Positions 27,601-49,900 of a stretch of DNA of 64,000 nt are shown in pieces; within the stretch, counting starts at the first letter, position 1; each line of letters opens with the position of its first letter. The translations under genes and the position numbers were made by a program. The notes under the pieces are model-generated. The model saw nothing but the letters and a program-made list of their open reading frames with translations, searched no databases and was not told where the DNA came from. Source of the stretch: Mytilus trossulus (taxonomy: Eukaryota). Where the stretch lies: positions 80,972,001-81,036,000 of the forward strand of contig NC_086379.1 of the NCBI RefSeq assembly GCF_036588685.1, written 5' to 3'.

Positions 27601-30600
27601 CTACAGGATATGGTGGTCCTAATTGTCAGTATATAGGTATGTATATCTTCATAGTGTTATGATTGGTGATTCTTACACATGTACCTGTCCTGCAGGATTT
27701 GGTGGTCCTAACTGTCAGTATATAGGTATGTATATCTACATAGTGTTATGATTGGTGATTCTTACACATGTACCTGTCCTGCAGGATTTGGTGGTCCTAA
27801 CTGTCAGTATATAGGTATGTATATTAACATAGTGTTATGATTGGTGATTCTTACACATGTACCTGTCCTACAGGATTTGGTGGTCCTAATTGTCAGTATA
27901 TAGGTATGTATATCTACATAGTGTTATGATTGGTGATTCTTACACATGTACCTGTCCTGCAGGATTTGGTGGTCCTAACTGTCAGTATATAGGTATGTAT
28001 ATTAACATAGTGTTATGATTGGTGATTCTTACACATGTACCTGTCCTACAGGATTTGGTGGTCCTAATTGTCAGTATATAGGTATGTATATCTACATAGT
28101 GTTATGATTGGTGATTCTTACACATGTACCTGTCCTGCAGGATTTGGTGGTCCTAACTGTCAGTATATAGGTATGTATATCTACATAGTGTTATGATTGG
28201 TGATTCTTACACATGTACCTGTCCTGCAGGATTTGGTGGTCCTAACTGTCAGTATATAGGTATGTATATTAACATAGTGTTATGATTGGTGATTCTTACA
28301 CATGTACCTGTCCTACAGGATATGGTGGTCCTAATTGTCAGTATATAGGTATGTATATCTTCATAGTGTTATGATTGGTGATTCTTACACATGTACCTGT
28401 CCTACAGGATATGGTGGTCCTAATTGTCAGTATATAGGTATGTATATCTTCATAGTGTTATGATTGGTGATTCTTACACATGTACCTGTCCTGCAGGATT
28501 TGGTGGTCCTAACTGTCAGTATATAGGTATGTATATGTACATAGTGTTATGATTGGTGATTCTTACACATGTACCTGTCCTACAGGATATGGTGGTCCTA
28601 ACTGTCAGTATATAGGTATGTATATGTACAGAGAATTATGATTGGTGATTCTTACACATGTACCTGTCCTGCAGGATTTGGTGGTCCTAACTGTCAGTAT
28701 ATAGGTATGTATATCTACATAGTGTTATGATTGGTGATTCTTACACATGTACCTGTCCTGCAGGATTTGGTGGTCCTAACTGTCAGTATATAGGTATGTA
28801 TATTAACATAGTGTTATGATTGGTGATTCTTACACATGTACCTGTCCTGCAGGATTTGGTGGTCCTAACTGTCAGTATATAGGTATGTATATTAACATAG
28901 TGTTATGATTGGTGATTCTTACACATGTACCTGTCCTACAGGATTTGGTGGTCCTAATTGTCAGTATATAGGTATGTATATCTACATAGTGTTATGATTG
29001 GTGATTCTTACACATGTACCTGTCCTACAGGATATGGTGGTCCTAATTGTCAGTATATAGGTATGTATATCTTCATAGTGTTATGATTGGTGATTCTTAC
29101 ACATGTACCTGTCCTGCAGGATTTGGTGGTCCTAACTGTCAGTATATAGGTATGTATATGTACAGAGAATTATGATTGGTGATTCTTACACATGTACCTG
29201 TCCTGCAGGATTTGGTGGTCCTAACTGTCAGTATATAGGTATGTATATCTTCATAGTGTTATGATAGGTGATTCTTACACATGTACCTGTCCTGCAGGAT
29301 ATGGTGGTCCTTACTGTCAGTATATAGGTATGTATATCTACATAGTGTTATGATTGGTGATTCTTACACATGTACCTGTCCTGCAGGATTTGGTGGTCCT
29401 AACTGTCAGTATATAGGTATGTATATGTACAGAGAATTATGATTGGTGATTCTTAACAGTAATGACCCTATAGTATTTTGTTGATACTGACTTTCAGAGT
29501 ACAGGTGTGTATCTACACAAAGCTTTGTGACAAGATATTCTTAACGGTATTACTTTCATTAAGTATTTGTTAAAAAGGGGGGGGGAGAAAAAAAGTATTT
29601 GGTAAAACTTACTGTCATTATATAGGAGTTTATCTTCACAGAGCTCTGTGACAAGATAGTCTTTCTTACCTGTGTGACTATCCTTTAGAATGTAGTGATA
29701 CGGACTGCCAATACCTATTAGAGCTTTGTGACATGATATTTTTAACTGTTTGGGTGGATTTGTTAAAATTGGAATGATAAATGTTATAAATCATTTTCCA
29801 TTCATTGTTATTGTTATTGATATGAGAAGACTTTTCATTTTGTTTTAGATGCTGAAGGATATTGCTCCTTTCAGATGTCTGATCCAGATTGTTTCCTCAT
29901 ACAAGATGTTACAGATAATTTTGATTGGTCAAGAGATAGTGTAAGTTAACTTGTTTACTTAATGCCATCTTTTTGCCCCACCTACGAAAAAAGTACACAT
30001 GTGCCCTATGATATGATCTTTCTAATTTTAATGCAAAAATAGTGTTTTTACCCCAAGTTCAAGGCTCACTGAACATAGAAAATGATAGTGCAAATTGGTC
30101 AAGGTAGTTTTTGATGAAGTTGAAGTCCAATCAACTTGAAACTTAGTATACATGTTCCCTGTGATATGATCTTTCTAATTTGAATGCCAAATTAGAGTTT
30201 TTACCCCAATTTCACGGTCCACTAAACACAGAAAATGATAGTGCAAGTGGGGCATCCGTGTACTATGGACACATTCTTGTTTTGATAAATCATTTCATAG
30301 AAATTGATCCAATATCCACCCATTTAGGTGCAAATCATATCTCTGGCCTTACATTGATACTGTGCTATGTACGCAATGTTTCAGGTTATTTCGGAAATGT
30401 TTTTATTCCAGGGAAACCTTCATCAGAGACCACCCCTATTGTTTTTGTTTTGATTTGTTTTGATTTTTTGATTTTTGATTTTTAGTTTATTTCTTTTTTA
30501 TTTCTTTTTTATTACTATTTTACTTTAATTTTTTTTAATTCTAAATATTTTAAACATTTTCTGAATTGTGTTTCTGTTTCTTTTGAACCCTATTGATAGG

Positions 30601-33600
30601 TTTTTATGGAACTTAGCACCTATTGTAGAATCCGTTTTGATAAGATGCCAGTATTTCCTGAATACTTTTTGAAGTTTTTCTGCTTGAGGATGATAATTTG
30701 TAATGAATGATACATTGTATTTATTTTCAACTTTGTTCTTTTTCTTTAATTTAATTTGTCTGTCTTGGAATTTGATTTTTGATAGAATTTGTTCTACCAA
30801 TTTCCGTTTATATCCTCTTACTAACAGTTTTTCAATAAAGAGATTTTTTCTGGTTTGAAATTCACTTTCATTGTTGGTGTTTCTAAGTATACGAATGCCT
30901 TCGCCTTTAATAAAAGATTTAAAGTTTGAGATGGGATGGTTTGAGTTTTTGTGATATTGGAATTTTTCAGTTTTCTTTGTAAAACATTTCAGGTCTAAAA
31001 CACCAGTATTTTTGAAGCGTTCGCCCTTGAAGATTTCTAGGTCTAGAAATTTTATGGACTGTTTATTGCATTCGTAAGTGAACTTTAGCAGGTCATGTTG
31101 TTTATTTGCATTTTCAAACATAAAGTCAATTTCAGACTCTTTTGCTTTCACCATTAGAAGTCCATCATCTCTCATTCTTTTATGAAAAATTATTTTTTCA
31201 GAGATTGGAGAGTTTTTTAGGATTGAATTTATGTGATTGTAAATAGCAATGTCACATATTTCAGGGGAAGCTGTTGCTCCCATTGATGCTCCAATGATTT
31301 GTCGATATGAATTTCCATGAAAGGTAAATTCATTATTGGAAAGGATGAGTTTTGTTATTTCAATCAAAAAATTGTTGGTAGGTTTTGTTACAGAATATTC
31401 AATTGTGTCATGTTCATCAAGCGCTTTTTGTAATGCTTCTGTGATTTCTTCAAATCTGAGATTGGTATATATAGTGATGTTATATCATATGTAACAAGTA
31501 GTACATTATTATCAAATGTACAGTTTTCAATATTTCTGATTAAGTCACCTGTATCAGATATGTATGTTTTTTGTGTTTTCACTAAGGGAAGCAAGAAATA
31601 ATCTAAGTATCTCCCTAACCTTTCAAGTGGTCCATTACACTGTGATATTATTGGTCTACCAGGGACATTTATAGTTTTTATTTGATTGTTCTCGTTTTCA
31701 ATGTTTTGTAAAACTTCACGGTCTAGTTTGTGAATTTTAGGGAGGAAGTATGCAAAAGGTGTTTTTATATAATTTTGTTCATTTTTAATGTATTTGAAAG
31801 ATATTTCATCAATACAGTTTTCTTCTTTCATTTTGTAGATTATTTCATATACCTTTTTCTAAGTGTTTTTAAGATTTATATCTTGGATTTGTTCATAATG
31901 TATGTTATCATTCAATTGTTTTTCACCTTCTTCTAGGTAGTCAGAAAGATTTTGAATGACTGTTACATTGTTTTTATCTGCTTTATGAATGATTATATTT
32001 TCATCGTGTTTTAGATTTTTCAGACAATTCCTTTCTTGTAGTGAAAGGTTAAATTCAGTTTTAGGGACATATTTAGATAATTCCATTTTCGTATAGAAAA
32101 TATATTTTTCAATAGGGTTGTCGGCAAATGTCGGCACCGAAAATTTTGATTTCTCCTTGAAAGGATGAATTTTACTGTGTATATTTCGATTTTCAAGGAA
32201 AAAGTATGAGAGTCTCAAATTTCTTTCCGTTTTTTTAAAATCTTTCATTATTTGTTTTGTGGATGTTTTTGTTGTTGGAACAAAGTTTAGTCCTTTAGCA
32301 AGAACTAATGTTTCTGGATGTGATAATGTTTTAGAGGATAGGTTCAGCACAAATTGTTTTGCAATTTTAAGCTTGATTTCTTTTTTATGTAGTTTTATTT
32401 TATTTTTAACTGCTTTGAATTTTTCAATGTTTTTATACTTTTTCTTGTTTTTATTAAGTCTTCTATGTTTTCCCATGCTTTTATTTTTGCATTGGTAATA
32501 ATTTTATTTTGTAGTATTTCATATACATAAATATGATTCTGTATCACTATTCTCATTGGATGTTTTTAATTGTGTAATGACCACAACACAAGGGGTGTGT
32601 CCTTCTTCATTATTGTTTGGTCAGTATCTATAATTGCTATCTAGATCAATCGTGGATACGCAGTAGGCAATAAATAAACAAACCTAGGGATAAAATATTC
32701 CCAGGTTTATTGATTTACTGTCATTAATTTGCAATATATCAACAATCCAAGTAAAAGCAAAGGTAGAGTTTAGGTATTTCAGTAACCATTTGATAAAAGA
32801 CAAAAGTTTGATATAGATTCTATATGGTTTAAATAATTTCATAGAAATTGATCCAATATCCACCCATTTAGGTGCGAATCATATCTCTGGCCTAATTTTC
32901 ATAGAAATTGATCCAATATCCACCCATTTAGGTGCGAATCATATCTCTGGCCTATCCATATGGATTAAAACGAACAGTAATTACAAATTTCATAATTATT
33001 TCATGTGAGATAAATCTGTAATTATTACTAATTAAACCATATCGAATCTATATCAAACTTTTGTCTTTTATCAAATGGTTACTGAAATACATAAACTCTA
33101 CTTTTGCTTTTACTTGGATTGTTGATATATTGCAAATTAATGACAGTAAATCAATAAATAATATTTTATCCCTAGGTTTGTTTATTTATTGCCTACTGCG
33201 TTTCATAGAAATTGATCCAATATCCACCCATTTAGGTGCGAATCATATCTCTGGCCTAATTTCATAGAAATTGATCCAATATCCACCCATTTAGGTGCGA
33301 ATCATATCTCTTGTTATTGATCTAAAGCATACTTGTAGAAATTCATAAACTCTTAATAAAGTAGATACAAAAACAGTATATGGAAAACTTATAAAACAAC
33401 ATTTCTTTTATTTCAAAATATTACTGACTTCAAAAGAATGAATTAAAAAACACAGCTTGCATTTATGAATACTTGAAATTTTTATCAACTTTAAACTTTG
33501 AACTTTAAAGATGCTTTTCCCGTTTGAATGGTTTTACACTAGTAATTTTGGAGCCCTTTATAGCTTGTTGTTTAGTGTGAGCCAAGGCTCTGTGTTGAAG

Positions 33601-36600: not shown

Positions 36601-39600
36601 CAGAGGAGATATAGCCATTGATGAAGTCAGACTTCTAACTACAGACTGTAGTAAGTACTGAGTATTTAAAATACAAATTATTTTAAAATCAAGAAGTATA
36701 ATGACATCATTAAAAGATATTGTGAAATAATGGATCCATGAAGAAGAATTTGATTAAAAAAGAAAACAGAACTCATTGTAATTGGAAAATATTTTTCAGT
36801 CTGTGCATCCGTTCGTTTGGCTGTCAGTTTGTCAATTTGATCAATTGTTACTCAATTCATTTGTTCAATCCTTCATCTGTCTGTCCCACTTCAGGTTAAA
36901 GTTTTTGGTTAATATAGTTTTTAAAGAAGTCGAAGTCCAATCAACTTGAAACTTTTTTCCTATGATATTATCTTTTCAATTTTAATGCCAAATTAGAGTT
37001 TTGACCCCAACTTGTCCACTGAACTGAACTGAGTGGGGCTTCCATTTACCATTCATGGACACATTCTTGCTTTCTTTATCATTTCAATTACATTTAATGA
37101 ATTCAATTATGGGAGACCACATATTGAAGATTTTTATTACAATTTGCAAAATAGACTGCTGGGTTGGTTTGACATTTCCTAGGAACTTTCTCCTGGAATT
37201 TATGTTTGGTAATACTTATATAATGATATTCTAAATATGTTGTTAAAACATTTGTTATTTCAGGTCCATGCTCACCTATAAACCCTTGTAGAAATGGAGG
37301 CTTCTGTTCTGTGTCAGGAGATACTTATACATGTACATGTCAGTCAGGGTATGATGGTCCTGAATGTCAATATATAGGTAAGTTCAAAGCTGGATACATT
37401 TTCAATATATCAAATTTCAGGGAGGAAATAGTAGCATTTTACAAATAAGTTTGTATTTAAAAAAAGGTTTTTCAGTTTGTTAAGATCTACTGATATTGTC
37501 TATTAAAATACTGTCGGTACATATCAGTTTGATGAAGGCTGGCATACTATGTCATGGTCCTGTAACTTTAAATTAATTAGCAATTTTGCTGTTCATACAA
37601 TTATCTTTTTTCTGAATTTTCTGCAGACAGACAAGACATATATCTGTGTCAACAGTTGATATTATGAAGGTTTTGTTAACTTTATTTGTTTCAAGGACTA
37701 TTGCATATTTTGATGTCCCCATTTTATATATCTTCAAACTTGCATTAAAATTAAAGCATTTATTCTAAAGAAACTTGTACTAAATGATATTTTTTAAAGA
37801 AATACATGTTATATTTTAGATTCCCAGAGATCTTGTTCCTTCGAGAAGACAGACCCCTCATGTTTCTTGGTACAAGATCAAATCAGTGACAATTTTGATT
37901 GGAGTAGAAGTAGGGTATGTGTAGGGCATTTACCAATACTCATTATATTTTAGAAATATTTTATGATGATGAAGAGTTATTCTGTATACAATTATTTAGG
38001 AGTAAAAGCTATGGCAAATACTTCTGAACATTTTTATTAAATTGATCTAAAGGGAAATGATATCAAAATGATTTTTTTAAGGAGAATTAAATATCATGGA
38101 ATCAGGTTTTAAAAGCTTAAAGATCTTAATTTTATGCCACCCAAAAAAAGATGTTTTGATCAATGTTACTCTGATTTTAAATGCAAGCATTGCTTCATTT
38201 GATCTTATCTTTTACTGATGCTGGTGCCACAAAAAAAGATTTAAATTACATTTAATGATATATTGAAAAAGGTATGTCAGGCCATAAAAAAGAATAGGTT
38301 TGTTTGCCCAAACGCTACCTACCTAGAAAAAAGCTGCCTACTCAAATTCTTTTATTGTCCTGATATGAAGAAGTTTTTTTTTAATCAGATATGCATGAAG
38401 ACTAATAAACACCCGATACTTCAATTTCTCTATTTGAAAAGAAAAAAAGTAAATGCCTACCAACCTACCCACTGTCTCAACCTTTGGGTAGGGTTTGGGC
38501 AAACCAAAATATTTTCAATTGTAGCCTCATTTGTCCTATTCCTATTTTGTGTTTTTACTTTTTTGTGTATTTGACAGAGAACACCCACTACAGCCACTGG
38601 TCCAACAAAAGCAGCAGATGGAATCACATTTTACTTCATAGAAGCATCTAAGCCATCTATAAATACCAAAGCCAGACTCATCAGTGATGTCAAGTTCTCA
38701 AGTAAGATGGGAATATTTTAGGAGTACTGTTTAATGAGTAAAAATTACAATCTGTAATGAATTTTATTTCTCTATTAGGTTCACATAAACTTAAATCAAA
38801 CTTACTTGAAATGATCCGAGGAACATGTTTGTGTTTATGACTATGGAGGCATATGATATATTTAAAAATGAAGGCTAACTATAAGGTTTAACTTTAAAGC
38901 AAAATATATTGATTGAGAAATGGATTGACCAATGAATTTTCAGAACTTATTTTGTTGAGTGTTTGAAGGCACTTCAGATATGAAGGACAGTAGTTCTCTG
39001 TAGAAATCATTCTTGAAAACTTGATGAGAATGGCTTATTTATCAAGGATAATAGGCTACATGTTATAATCCACAATGATTTTGTGCACAGAGGGGGGGGG
39101 GGGGGGGGGGGGGGAGAAAATATTATTATTGGCACAGAACTATCAAAATATTTTCTACCTTACAGCTGATTATGTCCCGTCTTTTTCACACTAAATCTAT
39201 CCTTGGTCAATGCATATGTTAATTTACAGAGATTTCAAGTTATATAGAGCGAACACATTTCTTAGTACTGAGGTGTAGATACATATTATTATTTTTTACT
39301 ATTCCAGATAAAACCAGATGTTTTACTATGTCATATCACATGTATGGAGAGCAGATTGGGACATTAAGAGTTCTTACCATGGACTCTGATAACACTGAAA
39401 CAGAACTATGGTCTGTGTCAGGGAATCAAGGAAATCAATGGATAGGCCAGATGTTCAGTGTTCAAACTTTGCCTGACTCTAAGGTTTGTAACGGCCTCAC
39501 TTTCATTTATTTGGTTTATCATTATTTGATAATGCTTTGTACTATCTAAAAGATAATATAAAAAAGAAGATGTGGTATGATTGCCAATGAGACAACTATC

Positions 39601-45799: not shown

Positions 45800-46930
45800 T
45801 TATTTTATGCCCCACCACGATAGTAGAGGGGCAGTATGTTTTCTGGTCTGTGTGTATTTGTGTTCATCCGTCCTTCTGTCTGTACCGCTTAAGGTTAAAG
45901 TTTTTGATGAAGTTGATCTTTCAAATTTTTTGGCCAAAATATAGTTTTGACCCCAATTTTACAGTCCACTTAACATAGAAAATAATGGTGCAAAGTTCAG
46001 TTTAAAGTTTTTGGTCAAGGTAATTTTTATACGCCCGTCAAAATTTTGATGGGACGTATTATGGTATACAAATGTCCGGTGTCTGTCCGTCCGTCCGTCT
46101 GTCCGGCGTAAACATGTCGCACCGTAACTTGAGAACGACTTATCCAAATTTTATGAAACTTAACTTGATTATGGCTTAAAACTTTAAACACTTCTTAGTT
46201 ATATTAATCTTAATATCTGTATACTTTTTGGTGATGATTCAAAATTTTATTTTTGAGTTATTGAGTATTTTGTAAAAAAAGGGGAGGTTTTTTTTACATG
46301 TCGCACCATATCTCAAAAACGATTTATGATTATTGCTTAAAACTTTACACATGTCTTTGTTATATTAATCTAAAGATCTGTATACTTTTTGGTGATGATT
46401 TAAAACTTTATTTTGGAGTAAATGAGTATTTTGTTAAACAGGGGAGGGTTTTTTTACATGTCGCGCCGTATCTCAAAAATAATTTATGATTATTGCTTAA
46501 AACTTTACACACTTCTTTGTTATATTAATCTAAAGATCTGTATACTTTTTGGTTTTGATTAAAAAATTTATTTTAGTGATATTTAGTTTTTTGTAAAAAA
46601 AAAAACAGGGTTGGGGGTTTCACATGTCCCGTTGTGTCTCAAAAACAATATATGGTGATTGCTTAAAACTTTCTCAGAAACTATTTATGATTATTGCATA
46701 AAACTTCCACACAAGACCGTGGGCGTAACATACGCTCATGGCGCAGCTGTTTATTGATGAAGTTAAAGTCCAATCAACTTAGTAATGGAAACTTAGTACA
46801 CATGTTTCCTATGATGCTCTTTCTATTTAGAATGCCAAATTAAAGTTTTGACTCCAATTTCACAGTACACTGCACATTGGATTTGATAATGCGAGTGAGG
46901 CATCGGTGTATTATGGACACATTCTTCTTT
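45800..46930 (+). mobile_element. Nested HINE-like elements with internal tandem core repeats
   Basis: An outer element (tttatgcccc...ggacacattctt) is interrupted at about 46025-46752 by an inner one (tttttatacgcccgtc, (gtcc)n, repeated cores, end ggcgcagctgtt). The inner family also occurs at about 44655-44990. Confidence 0.65.
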
Positions 46931-49900
46931 CATTATTGATGGTTTGAAAACAAACAACCCATAAATTACAATAAATATATATCTTGAAAAAGTTACAAAG
47001 ACACAACACTTCAAACAGTTGCAGGTATTGTTTATTTGTCAATCTTTTAGTGTACCAGAAGCTGTCATCAGGGTAAATGCTTAATGAGTATTTTTATGCC
47101 CCACCCACCTACGATAGTAGAGGGGCGTTACGATTTCTGATCTGTGCATCGTTCCGTCTGTTCGTCCCACTTCAGGTTAAAGTTTTGGGCAAGGTAGTTT
47201 TTGATGAAGCTGAAGTCCAATGAACTTGAAACTTAATACACATGTTCCTTATGATATGATCTTTCTTATTTTAAAACCAAATTAGACTTTTGACCCCATT
47301 TTCATAGTCCACTGAACATAGAAATTAAAAGTGTGAGTTTCAGGTTCAAGTTTTTGGTCAAGGTATTTTTCGATGAAGTTAAAGTCCAATCAACTTGAAA
47401 CTTAGTACACATCATCCCTTTTGGTTGATCTTTTTACTTTAAGGCCAAATTAGATTTTTTACCCAATTTCACAGTCCATTGAACATGGAAAATGATAACA
47501 CGGGTGTACTTTGGACACATTCTTGTTCTTCCTTGTACTAAATCAAAGTACAAAATGTACCTCAAGGATGATTTAAAAAAAAAATAATATTTTCCATAGA
47601 TAGTAAAATTTTATCAGTGAGAGGAATATATACGGGAAAAAGGTTTGAAAAAGTAAAATAATGTACATGTTTGTAAAAATATTGTCAGTTTCCTGTTGTA
47701 TAATTTTTTCCAAATTTGTACAATGCTTTTCTGGCAATTCCTTCCATTTTAAATAACTTTACATGGCCATAGGTACAACAATCAAATGTATATGGAATGC
47801 TGTGAAGAGTAGGAATAGATTAACAAGTTTATCTAGATTACTCTATTGTGTTTGAAATATTACACTCATATACAATTACACACGTCTTTCATAACACTGT
47901 CACCTAGTTCAAAAACTACATACTTATTAAGTATTTGTTCTGGAATTTGAAAAACTGGAAAATCATTGTACTTTTAATGTGTTAGTAAGAAACTGACCTC
48001 AATTAAAAAATAAGATGGTCCTAGACAATGTCCAAAAGCAAGTGAAATGACAAGCGCTTTAGAAAATGACTGGCTGGCTGACGTAAATAAACTTAAAGTA
48101 TAACTAAAAAGATGCCCACCTAAATTTTGCTCACCATAAAAACAAATAAATCTAACAGTTCTAAACCAGCTGGCAACAGTTATAATTCATGTTATGATAA
48201 TTACCTGATTAATGCAAAAATATTTTTGAAACTTAGCTCTACCACACAGCTGTGGTCTACAGCCATATCATTCAGCAATCTAAGGTTAGTTGACTATATC
48301 TTGAAAGACTAAGGTTCTGATTCATTCCTGTCATTAAAAGTATATTAGAAGATGAAATTTAGACCGCCTTCTGTAGCCACTTGATGAATGGCTTTGATCT
48401 ATAGAAGTATGGTCAATAGAGGTAGTTCTCCTAGCTGTTTTGTCGTAATGACGAAAGAAATCCATGCTGGTGGTATCTCATCTATAACAGTTGTACTCCC
48501 TGTGGATAAGCAGCATCAATGTCGTAAGCACTTTCTTCAATGGTTGACCCTTACTTTTTTCAGGCTGGACATCACCGTATTGAAGGAAACATTATGTGGG
48601 TTATTTTTGTCTCATCGACAGGTGTTTCAATGGTCGATGTAGTATTGCCTATTAAGTATTATATCCAACATATAATTTCATCCACTGAAATTATCCCTGG
48701 ATTTACTTAAAGTTGTCCAATGAGTAGATCGATTGATTATCAGTGTGCTTGTGCTGTGTACTTGTTTGGCTGTTGGTTGCTACAGGGCCTATCTGATGAA
48801 GTAGTCGATAATAACCAGTATGATCATGTTACCTTTATTAAATGGATTCAGTGTAAGAAAATGTACTCTCTGAAGGCTGGTTGTATTTCTGTAAATACAT
48901 CTGCTTATTATTAACTGCTTAATTCTTTCCTTTTTCATATTGGTCTATCCCAAGGTAGTCAAAATTGTCACATCAGTCGTATGCTTCCCACGATTACCAT
49001 GTCGTTGTGAAGTGCCTCCAATATTAACTTTACCTATAGTTGCTGCTGGTTAAACCGAACTGTGATTATCTGTGTTCTCCGATAGTAAATTATCTGTGAA
49101 GTACCATATTTCATCTCTTTCAACTGTATCAGGTGTCGTTTTCCTTCCATCTATGTACTTTACAAGAGACTTGTTCGTAGATTGATAATGGTGCTTGGTT
49201 AACGGCAAGTTATATCACGACTTGCTAGTTATTATTACATAGAATGGATTAGCATCATTTAGAATTGTTGCTCCCGTAGATGTATTCCTTACACTTATTG
49301 CATATCACCCACTTCAGTGCTAGAAATCCATTTTGTTCTGTGGGTATATTAAATTCGACTTTGTCAGACCTCAACTGGCGAATTTGGATCCCATGTTGCT
49401 TCTTAATAAAACTGCTTCTAGTGCTTTCCCAGAAGCGGAAAGCATGTGCAATTCATAAGATAAATTGTTTTGGCATAACCTGGTATTGGTGGGATATAAG
49501 GAACTCCTTGACTGCAATTTCTCAAATAATAAGTCCTGTTCATGACCTTATTTCCATGATTTCAGTTGGTGTTTATTAGGGGACCTTTCAGTGTTGGATA
49601 TGTCTTCAAATCAATAAGCCGTTTTCTGATTTAAGCTGTTCCATAAATTTACTGCAGTAGCCAACAAATAATAAAAAATTCTATCATCTTCCATGTTGAT
49701 TGGTCTGGCCATCTTATCTGGACAGTCCTCATCACTATTCAAAAAAACATCACGGACGATTCACTTGAGTCCTCTTGAAGAATATTTGTCAAGTGCGAGC
49801 ATCCTGTTACGGAAGTAAATCCTGTTTAGGACAATGTAGAGCTTGTCTAGTTGTCCGTCGAGAGATATATTTTGATGTGAATCAGATAAGCATTATATCG

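Follow-up and report, generated by a model that had tools for sequence, protein, structure and literature searches.

Penelope-like elements (PLEs) carry hammerhead ribozymes in their pseudo-long terminal repeats (pseudo-LTRs) (Cervera & de la Pena 2014, PMC4209133; Craig et al. 2021, PMC8557442). According to the same studies, evidence for cleavage in vivo is lacking, the role of the ribozyme is unproven and its function is unclear. A PLE in the mussel Mytilus trossulus bears on this question. The element lies in a 64-kb stretch of contig NC_086379.1 (positions 80,972,001 to 81,036,000), which is analyzed here at its full length and called the window. It contains five copies of a 57-nt sequence, the tail. 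The first tail directly follows the predicted cleavage site of a hammerhead, and three of the other four begin on exactly the same base with no ribozyme beside them. Why should DNA copies start at a site of predicted RNA cleavage? From the junctions described below, the answer is most likely the one that the first-pass annotation had proposed, that is, the genome records self-cleavage in vivo after GUA.

The hammerhead and the 57-nt tails

The region is best explained as a 5'-truncated PLE that lacks an endonuclease and has, 57 nt before its 3' end, a monomeric hammerhead of type I. The ribozyme and the tails are laid out as follows.

30432-30344, minus strand: type I hammerhead, from sequence reading, folding and pair counts
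30432-30427 with 30349-30344, minus strand: stem I, uggucu/aggcca, 6 bp with one G.U
30426-30420, minus strand: CUGAUGA core, from sequence reading
30419-30415 with 30387-30383, minus strand: stem II, a 5-bp helix continuing into an inner hairpin
30382-30379, minus strand: GAAA core, from sequence reading
30379-30374 with 30356-30351, minus strand: stem III, 6 bp including A15.1-U16.1, plus a 4-bp extension
30352-30350, minus strand: triplet GUA, with H17 = A at 30350
30350/30349, minus strand: predicted cut, after A30350 and before A30349, from hammerhead numbering; it coincides with the 5' ends of DNA copies
30293-30349, minus strand: tail copy 1, the 57-mer from the first base past the predicted cut to the 3' end of the element
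32837-32893, minus strand: tail copy 2, begins on the cut-site base; tta(t) comes next, and then arm B, an internal leader of the element
32894-32896, minus strand: spacer att, between tail copies 2 and 3
32897-32953, minus strand: tail copy 3, begins on the cut-site base and is preceded by unrelated ccatatggat
33201-33257, minus strand: tail copy 4, begins on the cut-site base after spacer tt
33258-33259, minus strand: spacer tt, between tail copies 4 and 5
33260-33311, minus strand: tail copy 5, without the first 5 nt
30275-30286, minus strand: possible target-site duplication ATCAAAACAAGA, with its partner ATCAATAACAAGA at 33309-33321

The conserved hammerhead core, that is, CUGANGA, GAAA and an NUH triplet with the A15.1-U16.1 pair, is present and is invariant or nearly so in 20 copies. 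There are three helices, and helix I is open, with the 5' and 3' ends of the motif both lying in it. The minimum-free-energy fold (RNAfold) recovers helices II and III, with helix I in a slightly shifted register or variant. An alignment of 20 distinct hammerhead copies was used for pair counts: standard pairs occupy 91.9% of the cells, versus 25-46% after a shift of the 3' partners by 1-3 columns. Four compensatory pairs are found in stems I and II. All four come from a sibling family, B (locus L020), whose stem I is cgacct/aggtcg versus uggucu/aggcca in family A, to which the window element belongs, and whose stem II is gaguu/aacuc versus agguu/aaccu. A hammerhead with a helix III this long and stable should act as a monomer.

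A repeat search agrees with the first-pass annotation on the five 57-mers, on the three upstream copies that start on the post-cut base and on the fourth that is 5 nt shorter; its reading that these four upstream copies contain no upstream ribozyme sequence is borne out as well (0 of 4). The four upstream tails are identical to each other, and tail copy 1 differs from them by one CpG-to-TpG change. All five are antisense on the plus strand, as would be expected had one cDNA (complementary DNA) strand copied the tail RNA repeatedly. The 12-13 bp candidate duplication surrounds the whole ~3-kb composite, with one indel and with 6 unexplained nt between the tail and the copy at 30275-30286; it is a weak hint that the composite arose in a single event. 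The hairpin that had been described for the 57-mer is a mixed case. The predicted pairs do form, but the folding energy is not clearly below that of shuffled sequences (z -1.85 and -0.92), and the hairpin was rejected as a significant structure.

Junctions at the predicted cut site in two families

The first-pass annotation had named a histogram of tail junctions against the GUA site as the test of its proposal. We searched the 1.3-Gb Mytilus genome with a 29-nt core pattern, using the reversed pattern as the control; 60 tails were matched by the former and 0 by the latter. Junctions were tabulated at 50 loci, and several others were judged from coordinates or 34-nt pattern matches only. About 30 of the ~60 tails are preceded by the ribozyme. 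Among the independent junctions that lack it, there is a sharp peak at the cut: ~15 of ~26 fall within one or two bases of it, versus a chance expectation of ~0.6 of 26 per 3-nt bin for a uniform spread over ~130 nt.

Ten distinct ribozyme-less junctions are exactly at +1, the first base past the cut. These are three in the window, C5:35468750, C2:6356748, the C5:72961821 group, the C5:72958586 group, C10:49207959, C6:46675136 and C65:1339911; the last two represent an ATGCC subfamily, of which locus L040 has the ribozyme-linked form. About five more are ambiguous by 1-2 nt (C3:46702435, C5:35467116, both halves of the palindrome at L035, and L020). Three junctions are at +3 to +6, and ~8 are elsewhere, from -74 to +33.

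The cut-site peak is replicated in family B, whose stem I has a different sequence. Junctions in this family were read from pattern matches in IUPAC (International Union of Pure and Applied Chemistry) code only. Sixty of the 75 exact tails follow GTA, nine follow T, and six follow CA or AA. Upstream context covers six of the nine T-preceded tails, excluding C3:47372943 and two of four C13 duplicates, and all six read AATTT/AGGTCGG, that is, tail to tail at +1. Single junctions occur at +4, +6 and +8. The predicted cut site is thus a recurrent sharp boundary in two families of one genome, which provides an in vivo record independent of RNA data.

Family B itself (L020:470-640, minus strand) occupies ~40 or more loci, and its copies are 99% identical at 20 loci at least. 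Its usual form is two inverted ribozyme-tail ends ~1.2 kb apart. It is probably a young, recently active non-autonomous PLE derivative.

Could a boundary this exact have been set by something other than a cut? One proposal is that the RNA stays whole and that the intact hammerhead, folded into its three-way junction, brings the reverse transcriptase (RT) to a stall and makes it switch template there. Structured RNA does pause RTs, and the ribozyme helices are stable in the fold. However, the boundary is exact to the base in at least ten events and lies beyond the 3' strand of stem I. Since that strand would be unwound first, a stall is expected near +7 and spread over several bases. About half of the copies, moreover, read through the ribozyme. 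We regard stalling as very unlikely.

A second proposal places a transcription start at +1, driven by a promoter in the terminal repeat, so that the short copies would be cDNAs of a capped transcript. PLE terminal repeats have been reported to hold promoters (PMC3846280). The start would nevertheless have to match, exactly and in two families with different stem I sequences, the base that is set by the ribozyme, and no initiator-like motif is found at gtaAGG. Copying of a cap could also leave an extra G. None is present at any junction, which argues against a capped 5' end, and we give this proposal hardly any credence.

A third possibility is that the events took place in DNA, either as slippage, unequal crossover or deletion, or with a pre-existing 57-bp host repeat as the insertion target. 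L032 does differ from its paralogue L014 by a deletion of 596 bp. Yet such events offer no reason for breakpoints to pile up on the base where a ribozyme cuts. As for a host repeat, only ~60 copies of the 57-mer exist, almost all of them alongside this PLE, and the ribozyme depends on the 57-mer for its stem I. An origin in DNA is, in our judgment, extremely improbable.

Proposed copying of the RNA past the cut

If a cut sets the 5' boundary of the tails, what sets the other end? The A/T spacers had been described as joining adjacent copies. They are not untemplated filler but correspond to the opening 2-3 nt (tta) of what comes after the tail in a canonical element. In the canonical units, which form a tandem array on contig C11 (see the last section), the 5' untranslated region (UTR) opens with ttatgtctagat directly after the tail. 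The spacers tt, att and tta between tails are templated and represent the start of ttatgtctagat. Tails elsewhere carry 0, 2 (tt), 3 (tta), 5 (ttatg), 6 (ttatgt) or 9-12 nt of ttatgtctagat and then run into unrelated sequence. With the spacer included, the copied unit is 57-60 nt. The 62-nt tail of family B, which ends ATAATTT(A), behaves like that of family A.

This spacer pattern matches the internal initiation described for a PLE of Anolis (PMC11167929). We suggest that the RT begins a few bases beyond GAAA, probably at an internal point of a longer RNA, in which case the template would not have to be 57 nt in length. Four tail families, namely A, B and the copies at C2:3461xxxx and C4:6119xxxx, share the conserved block GGGTGGATATTGGATCAAT, a candidate RT recognition site. 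Across the diverged tail families, this block is better conserved than the surrounding hairpin stems.

Several loci have a simple structure. At L038 (C10), a small insertion consists of 29 nt of tail in inverted orientation, a full tail that starts at +1, and ttatgt, and it is flanked on both sides by the same 14-16 nt, ACAGATAATGTAGC, a target-site duplication. That such a duplication is made in a family with no endonuclease of its own suggests that the enzyme is supplied in trans. At L035 (C6), two tails stand head to head and overlap at the self-complementary GGCC of their first bases. This is the form that would be expected from two run-off cDNAs, primed on opposite strands, whose 3' ends annealed. 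The inverted arm at L048 contains the ribozyme from -16 and then three tails, the third of them partial, with tta between the first two and ttatgtcta between the second and the third. L032 and L033 match their paralogue L014 except that 596 nt are missing, and the right breakpoint of this deletion is exactly at the cut base.

The solo tails, one with its target-site duplication, and the tail-to-tail tandems support the view that post-cut RNA was reverse transcribed on its own. To this extent, the earlier proposal that the RT reused the short cleavage product stands. Its other half, a telomerase-like addition of repeats, in which the RT would hold one short RNA and add repeat after repeat, is not supported. 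PLE RTs and telomerase RTs are sister groups (PMC8557442), and tails do occur in tandem. However, the maximum at any locus is two full tails and one partial tail; the long arrays of a short templated repeat that such copying would leave are not found. Every unit spans the whole stretch between the cut site and the start site and is not a permuted repeat, and tails also join unrelated sequence. The chance that tails were made by iterative copying seems to us minimal.

We propose the following mechanism, which we consider likely as a whole. The ribozyme would cut transcripts in vivo after GUA. The downstream product, with a 5'-OH and beginning AGGCC, would retain the tail module at which the PLE RT initiates, 0-12 nt past GAAA and usually after tt or tta. 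From this start site, the RT would run off the cut end after 57-60 nt. The short cDNA could then meet one of three fates. It may be integrated alone, giving solo tails, such as the one with the 14-16 bp target duplication. The RT may restart at the start site of another RNA, giving tail-tail and tail-body junctions, as in the window. Finally, the cDNA may be joined head to head with a cDNA from the other strand, giving inverted tails with the GGCC palindrome.

The published biochemistry of PLEs fits these steps and thus counts in their favor (Frangieh et al. 2024, PMC11167929). The PLE RT initiates internally, downstream of the hammerhead, and RNA truncated to just upstream of the cut site still works as a template; likewise, in our families, the RT start would be downstream of the cut and RNA near the cut would suffice. 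Both target DNA strands are cleaved and extended by the PLE in vitro, and priming by both would explain the head-to-head forms. Variable starts give short optional extensions in both systems. What that study calls the "tail" lies between two RT start sites, whereas ours extends from the cut to the start.

A competing explanation accepts the same ribozyme-cut RNA but builds the doubled tails by successive insertions, each cDNA being primed where the AT-rich end (AAATTA) of a resident tail is nicked, a kind of homing. The PLE endonuclease favors ATT within the terminal repeat of its own element (PMC11167929). Solo tails show that single-tail insertions occur, and at L020, a family-A tail stands immediately after a family-B tail. 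Against this, the four upstream tails of the window are mutually identical, a single 12-13 bp duplication possibly surrounds the whole 3-kb composite, and the family has no endonuclease of its own. We judge successive insertions to be unlikely, although sequence alone would not decide between them and template jumps in one event.

Several points weigh against cleavage followed by run-off and restart. In the Anolis experiments, the PLE hammerhead site was neither the start nor the end of any read, and insertion was normal with ribozyme mutants, so that cleavage was dispensable in vitro (PMC11167929); the genome studied here, in contrast, has copies that end at the cut. The inverted leader fragment at 32954-33200, which lies between the tail pairs, is not explained by simple run-off and restart. 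The family encodes no endonuclease that would account for the target duplication. A donor with a doubled tail may have passed on some of the +1 junctions, which would then not be independent; the safe lower bound that allows for such inheritance is 12 independent +1 events. The remaining points concern the ribozyme. The closing pair of stem II (10.1-11.1) is A.C in 18 of 20 family-A copies, and the standard pair is found only in the window copy (A-U) and in family B (G-C). The Rfam hammerhead models had no match, at the gathering score or at E<=10, on the 64 kb, on a 3.3-kb segment or on a 111-nt segment, and none on family B either. The misses are likely due to the long inserts in helices II and III. 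We retain the assignment despite them because of the core, the helices and the covariation, and with Rfam silent, it is by the core and three helices that the complete minus-strand hammerhead of the first-pass annotation, at 30432-30344 and cut between 30350 and 30349, was recognized.

How does this proposal relate to known systems? The element shares with hammerhead PLEs (PMC4209133, PMC8557442) an RT with PLE-type motifs, the hammerhead near the 3' end and in the terminal repeat, the tandem, partial-tandem and inverted insertions, and the variable 3' ends. It differs in that the motifs of animal PLEs are minimal and dimer-dependent, while helix III here is long and stable; in addition, no GIY-YIG endonuclease is encoded and DNA junctions map to the cut site. 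With the hepatitis delta virus (HDV)-like ribozymes of R2, RTE and L1Tc (PMC3774820, PMC3383444), the shared feature is that self-cleavage sets the RNA's 5' end and becomes visible as a 5' junction in DNA. Those ribozymes lie downstream of their cut and are kept in the element; in contrast, the hammerhead here is nearly all upstream and is lost. It follows that cleavage would separate the RT start module from the coding body.

Non-LTR retrozymes are small tandem repeats with type I hammerheads, are proposed to depend on PLEs and occur in mussels (PMC7229834; bioRxiv 10.64898/2026.07.22.740005). Like the tails, they are short non-coding PLE-terminal units. Each retrozyme unit, however, contains a whole ribozyme and is thought to circularize, whereas the only part of the hammerhead in the 57-60 nt tails is the 3' strand of stem I. 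The tails cannot self-cleave or be released as monomers. A mini-array at C14:51143378-51143914 (minus strand) is built from units of 121-130 nt, each a partial hammerhead plus a 62-nt tail, with some tails doubled; it resembles a very short retrozyme-like satellite.

A full-text literature search, with incomplete coverage, returned no report of PLE junctions that map to hammerhead cut sites. The result is new evidence inside a known framework. If the mechanism is true, post-cut RNA would have been sufficient as an RT template, and there is a concrete, testable route to the tandem and inverted structures of PLEs. The histogram of junctions against the cut site can be transferred to any PLE-bearing genome. 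It is tempting to go further and propose that hammerhead cleavage is a built-in step that shapes PLE insertions generally, that the 57-60 nt RNA is a complete RT substrate and the smallest retrotransposed unit known, and that run-off and restart build pseudo-LTRs, tandems and head-to-head inverted ends, which have long been puzzling. PLE hammerheads would then at last have an in vivo role, or a cost. We offer this wider proposal only tentatively and hold it to be doubtful.

The element, its canonical unit and its surroundings

The other parts of the window element are as follows.

30433-30524, minus strand: A-rich 3' UTR with 11-nt periodic repeats, from the repeat search
30525-32476, minus strand: RT open reading frame (ORF) with PLE-type motifs, in three pieces (31859-32476, 31388-31831 and 30525-31367)
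32655-32836, minus strand: arm B, which separates ORF1 from ORF2 as a leader in the canonical unit; site of the 5' truncation of the window copy
32954-33200, plus strand: oppositely oriented piece of the canonical leader, comprising the 75 nt plus arm B, from the repeat search and comparison with C11

The RT has the motifs FLPKIHK, GRPIIS, RDD (MRDD in the window) and FLD..IFKG, which are typical of PLE RTs. In the window RT ORF (30525-32476, minus strand) and at L011 and L050, MRDD replaces the usual Y/F-x-DD motif. Homologues carry RVT_1, and the best named protein relatives are reverse-transcriptase proteins of Mytilus galloprovincialis and M. edulis. A local copy of Pfam was silent on the three window ORF pieces and on relatives of 346 and 560 amino acids, and a sequence search of the Protein Data Bank found no relevant relative. 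The GIY-YIG endonuclease is absent from the RT ORF, which stops ~60 amino acids past the thumb region in all copies. No obvious GIY-YIG motif was seen in ORF1 of the C11 units, which was read by eye, without a profile-library scan.

The canonical order is given by the tandem array of four 3.3-kb units on C11 (L050 and L006-L009; G000:C11:2552808-2562914). It reads: ribozyme, tail, 5' UTR, small ORF1, 75 nt plus arm B, RT ORF, A-rich UTR, ribozyme, tail. The C11 units have a common 677-nt deletion in the RT ORF (window 32018-31343), and their ORF1 encodes ~140 amino acids. The window copy lacks the ~1.2 kb of 5' UTR and ORF1 that is found in these units, its truncation being at 32836. That is, the upstream tails of the window are joined to an internal point, arm B, and not to the true 5' end of the element. 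The reversed leader fragment produces an inverted repeat (32655-32835 and 33029-33204); inverted arms are found in the window, at L048 and at L015. An "inverted tail plus leader" junction common to the window and the C11 units was considered and rejected, since the BLAST alignment had run on through a match due to chance, and the sequence itself shows independent junctions.

In the 5' UTR of the canonical unit (L050:7030-7075, minus strand), ~35 nt are antisense to helix III and the cut site of the ribozyme. Judging from this complementarity, the segment could pair with the ribozyme and modulate cleavage.

PLEs that lack an endonuclease are usually associated with telomeres. The start of contig C12 (C12:1-9000) is a CCCTAA-type telomeric repeat, and a family-A tail is present at C12:24157, ~24 kb from the end.

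The 3'-flanking DNA of the window element (29992-30278) belongs to another repeat family, which begins caagaatgtgtcc. It holds a 153-nt tandem duplication (29992-30101 and 30145-30254), and paralogues of this flanking repeat lie at 36905-37086 and 46751-47527 of the window.

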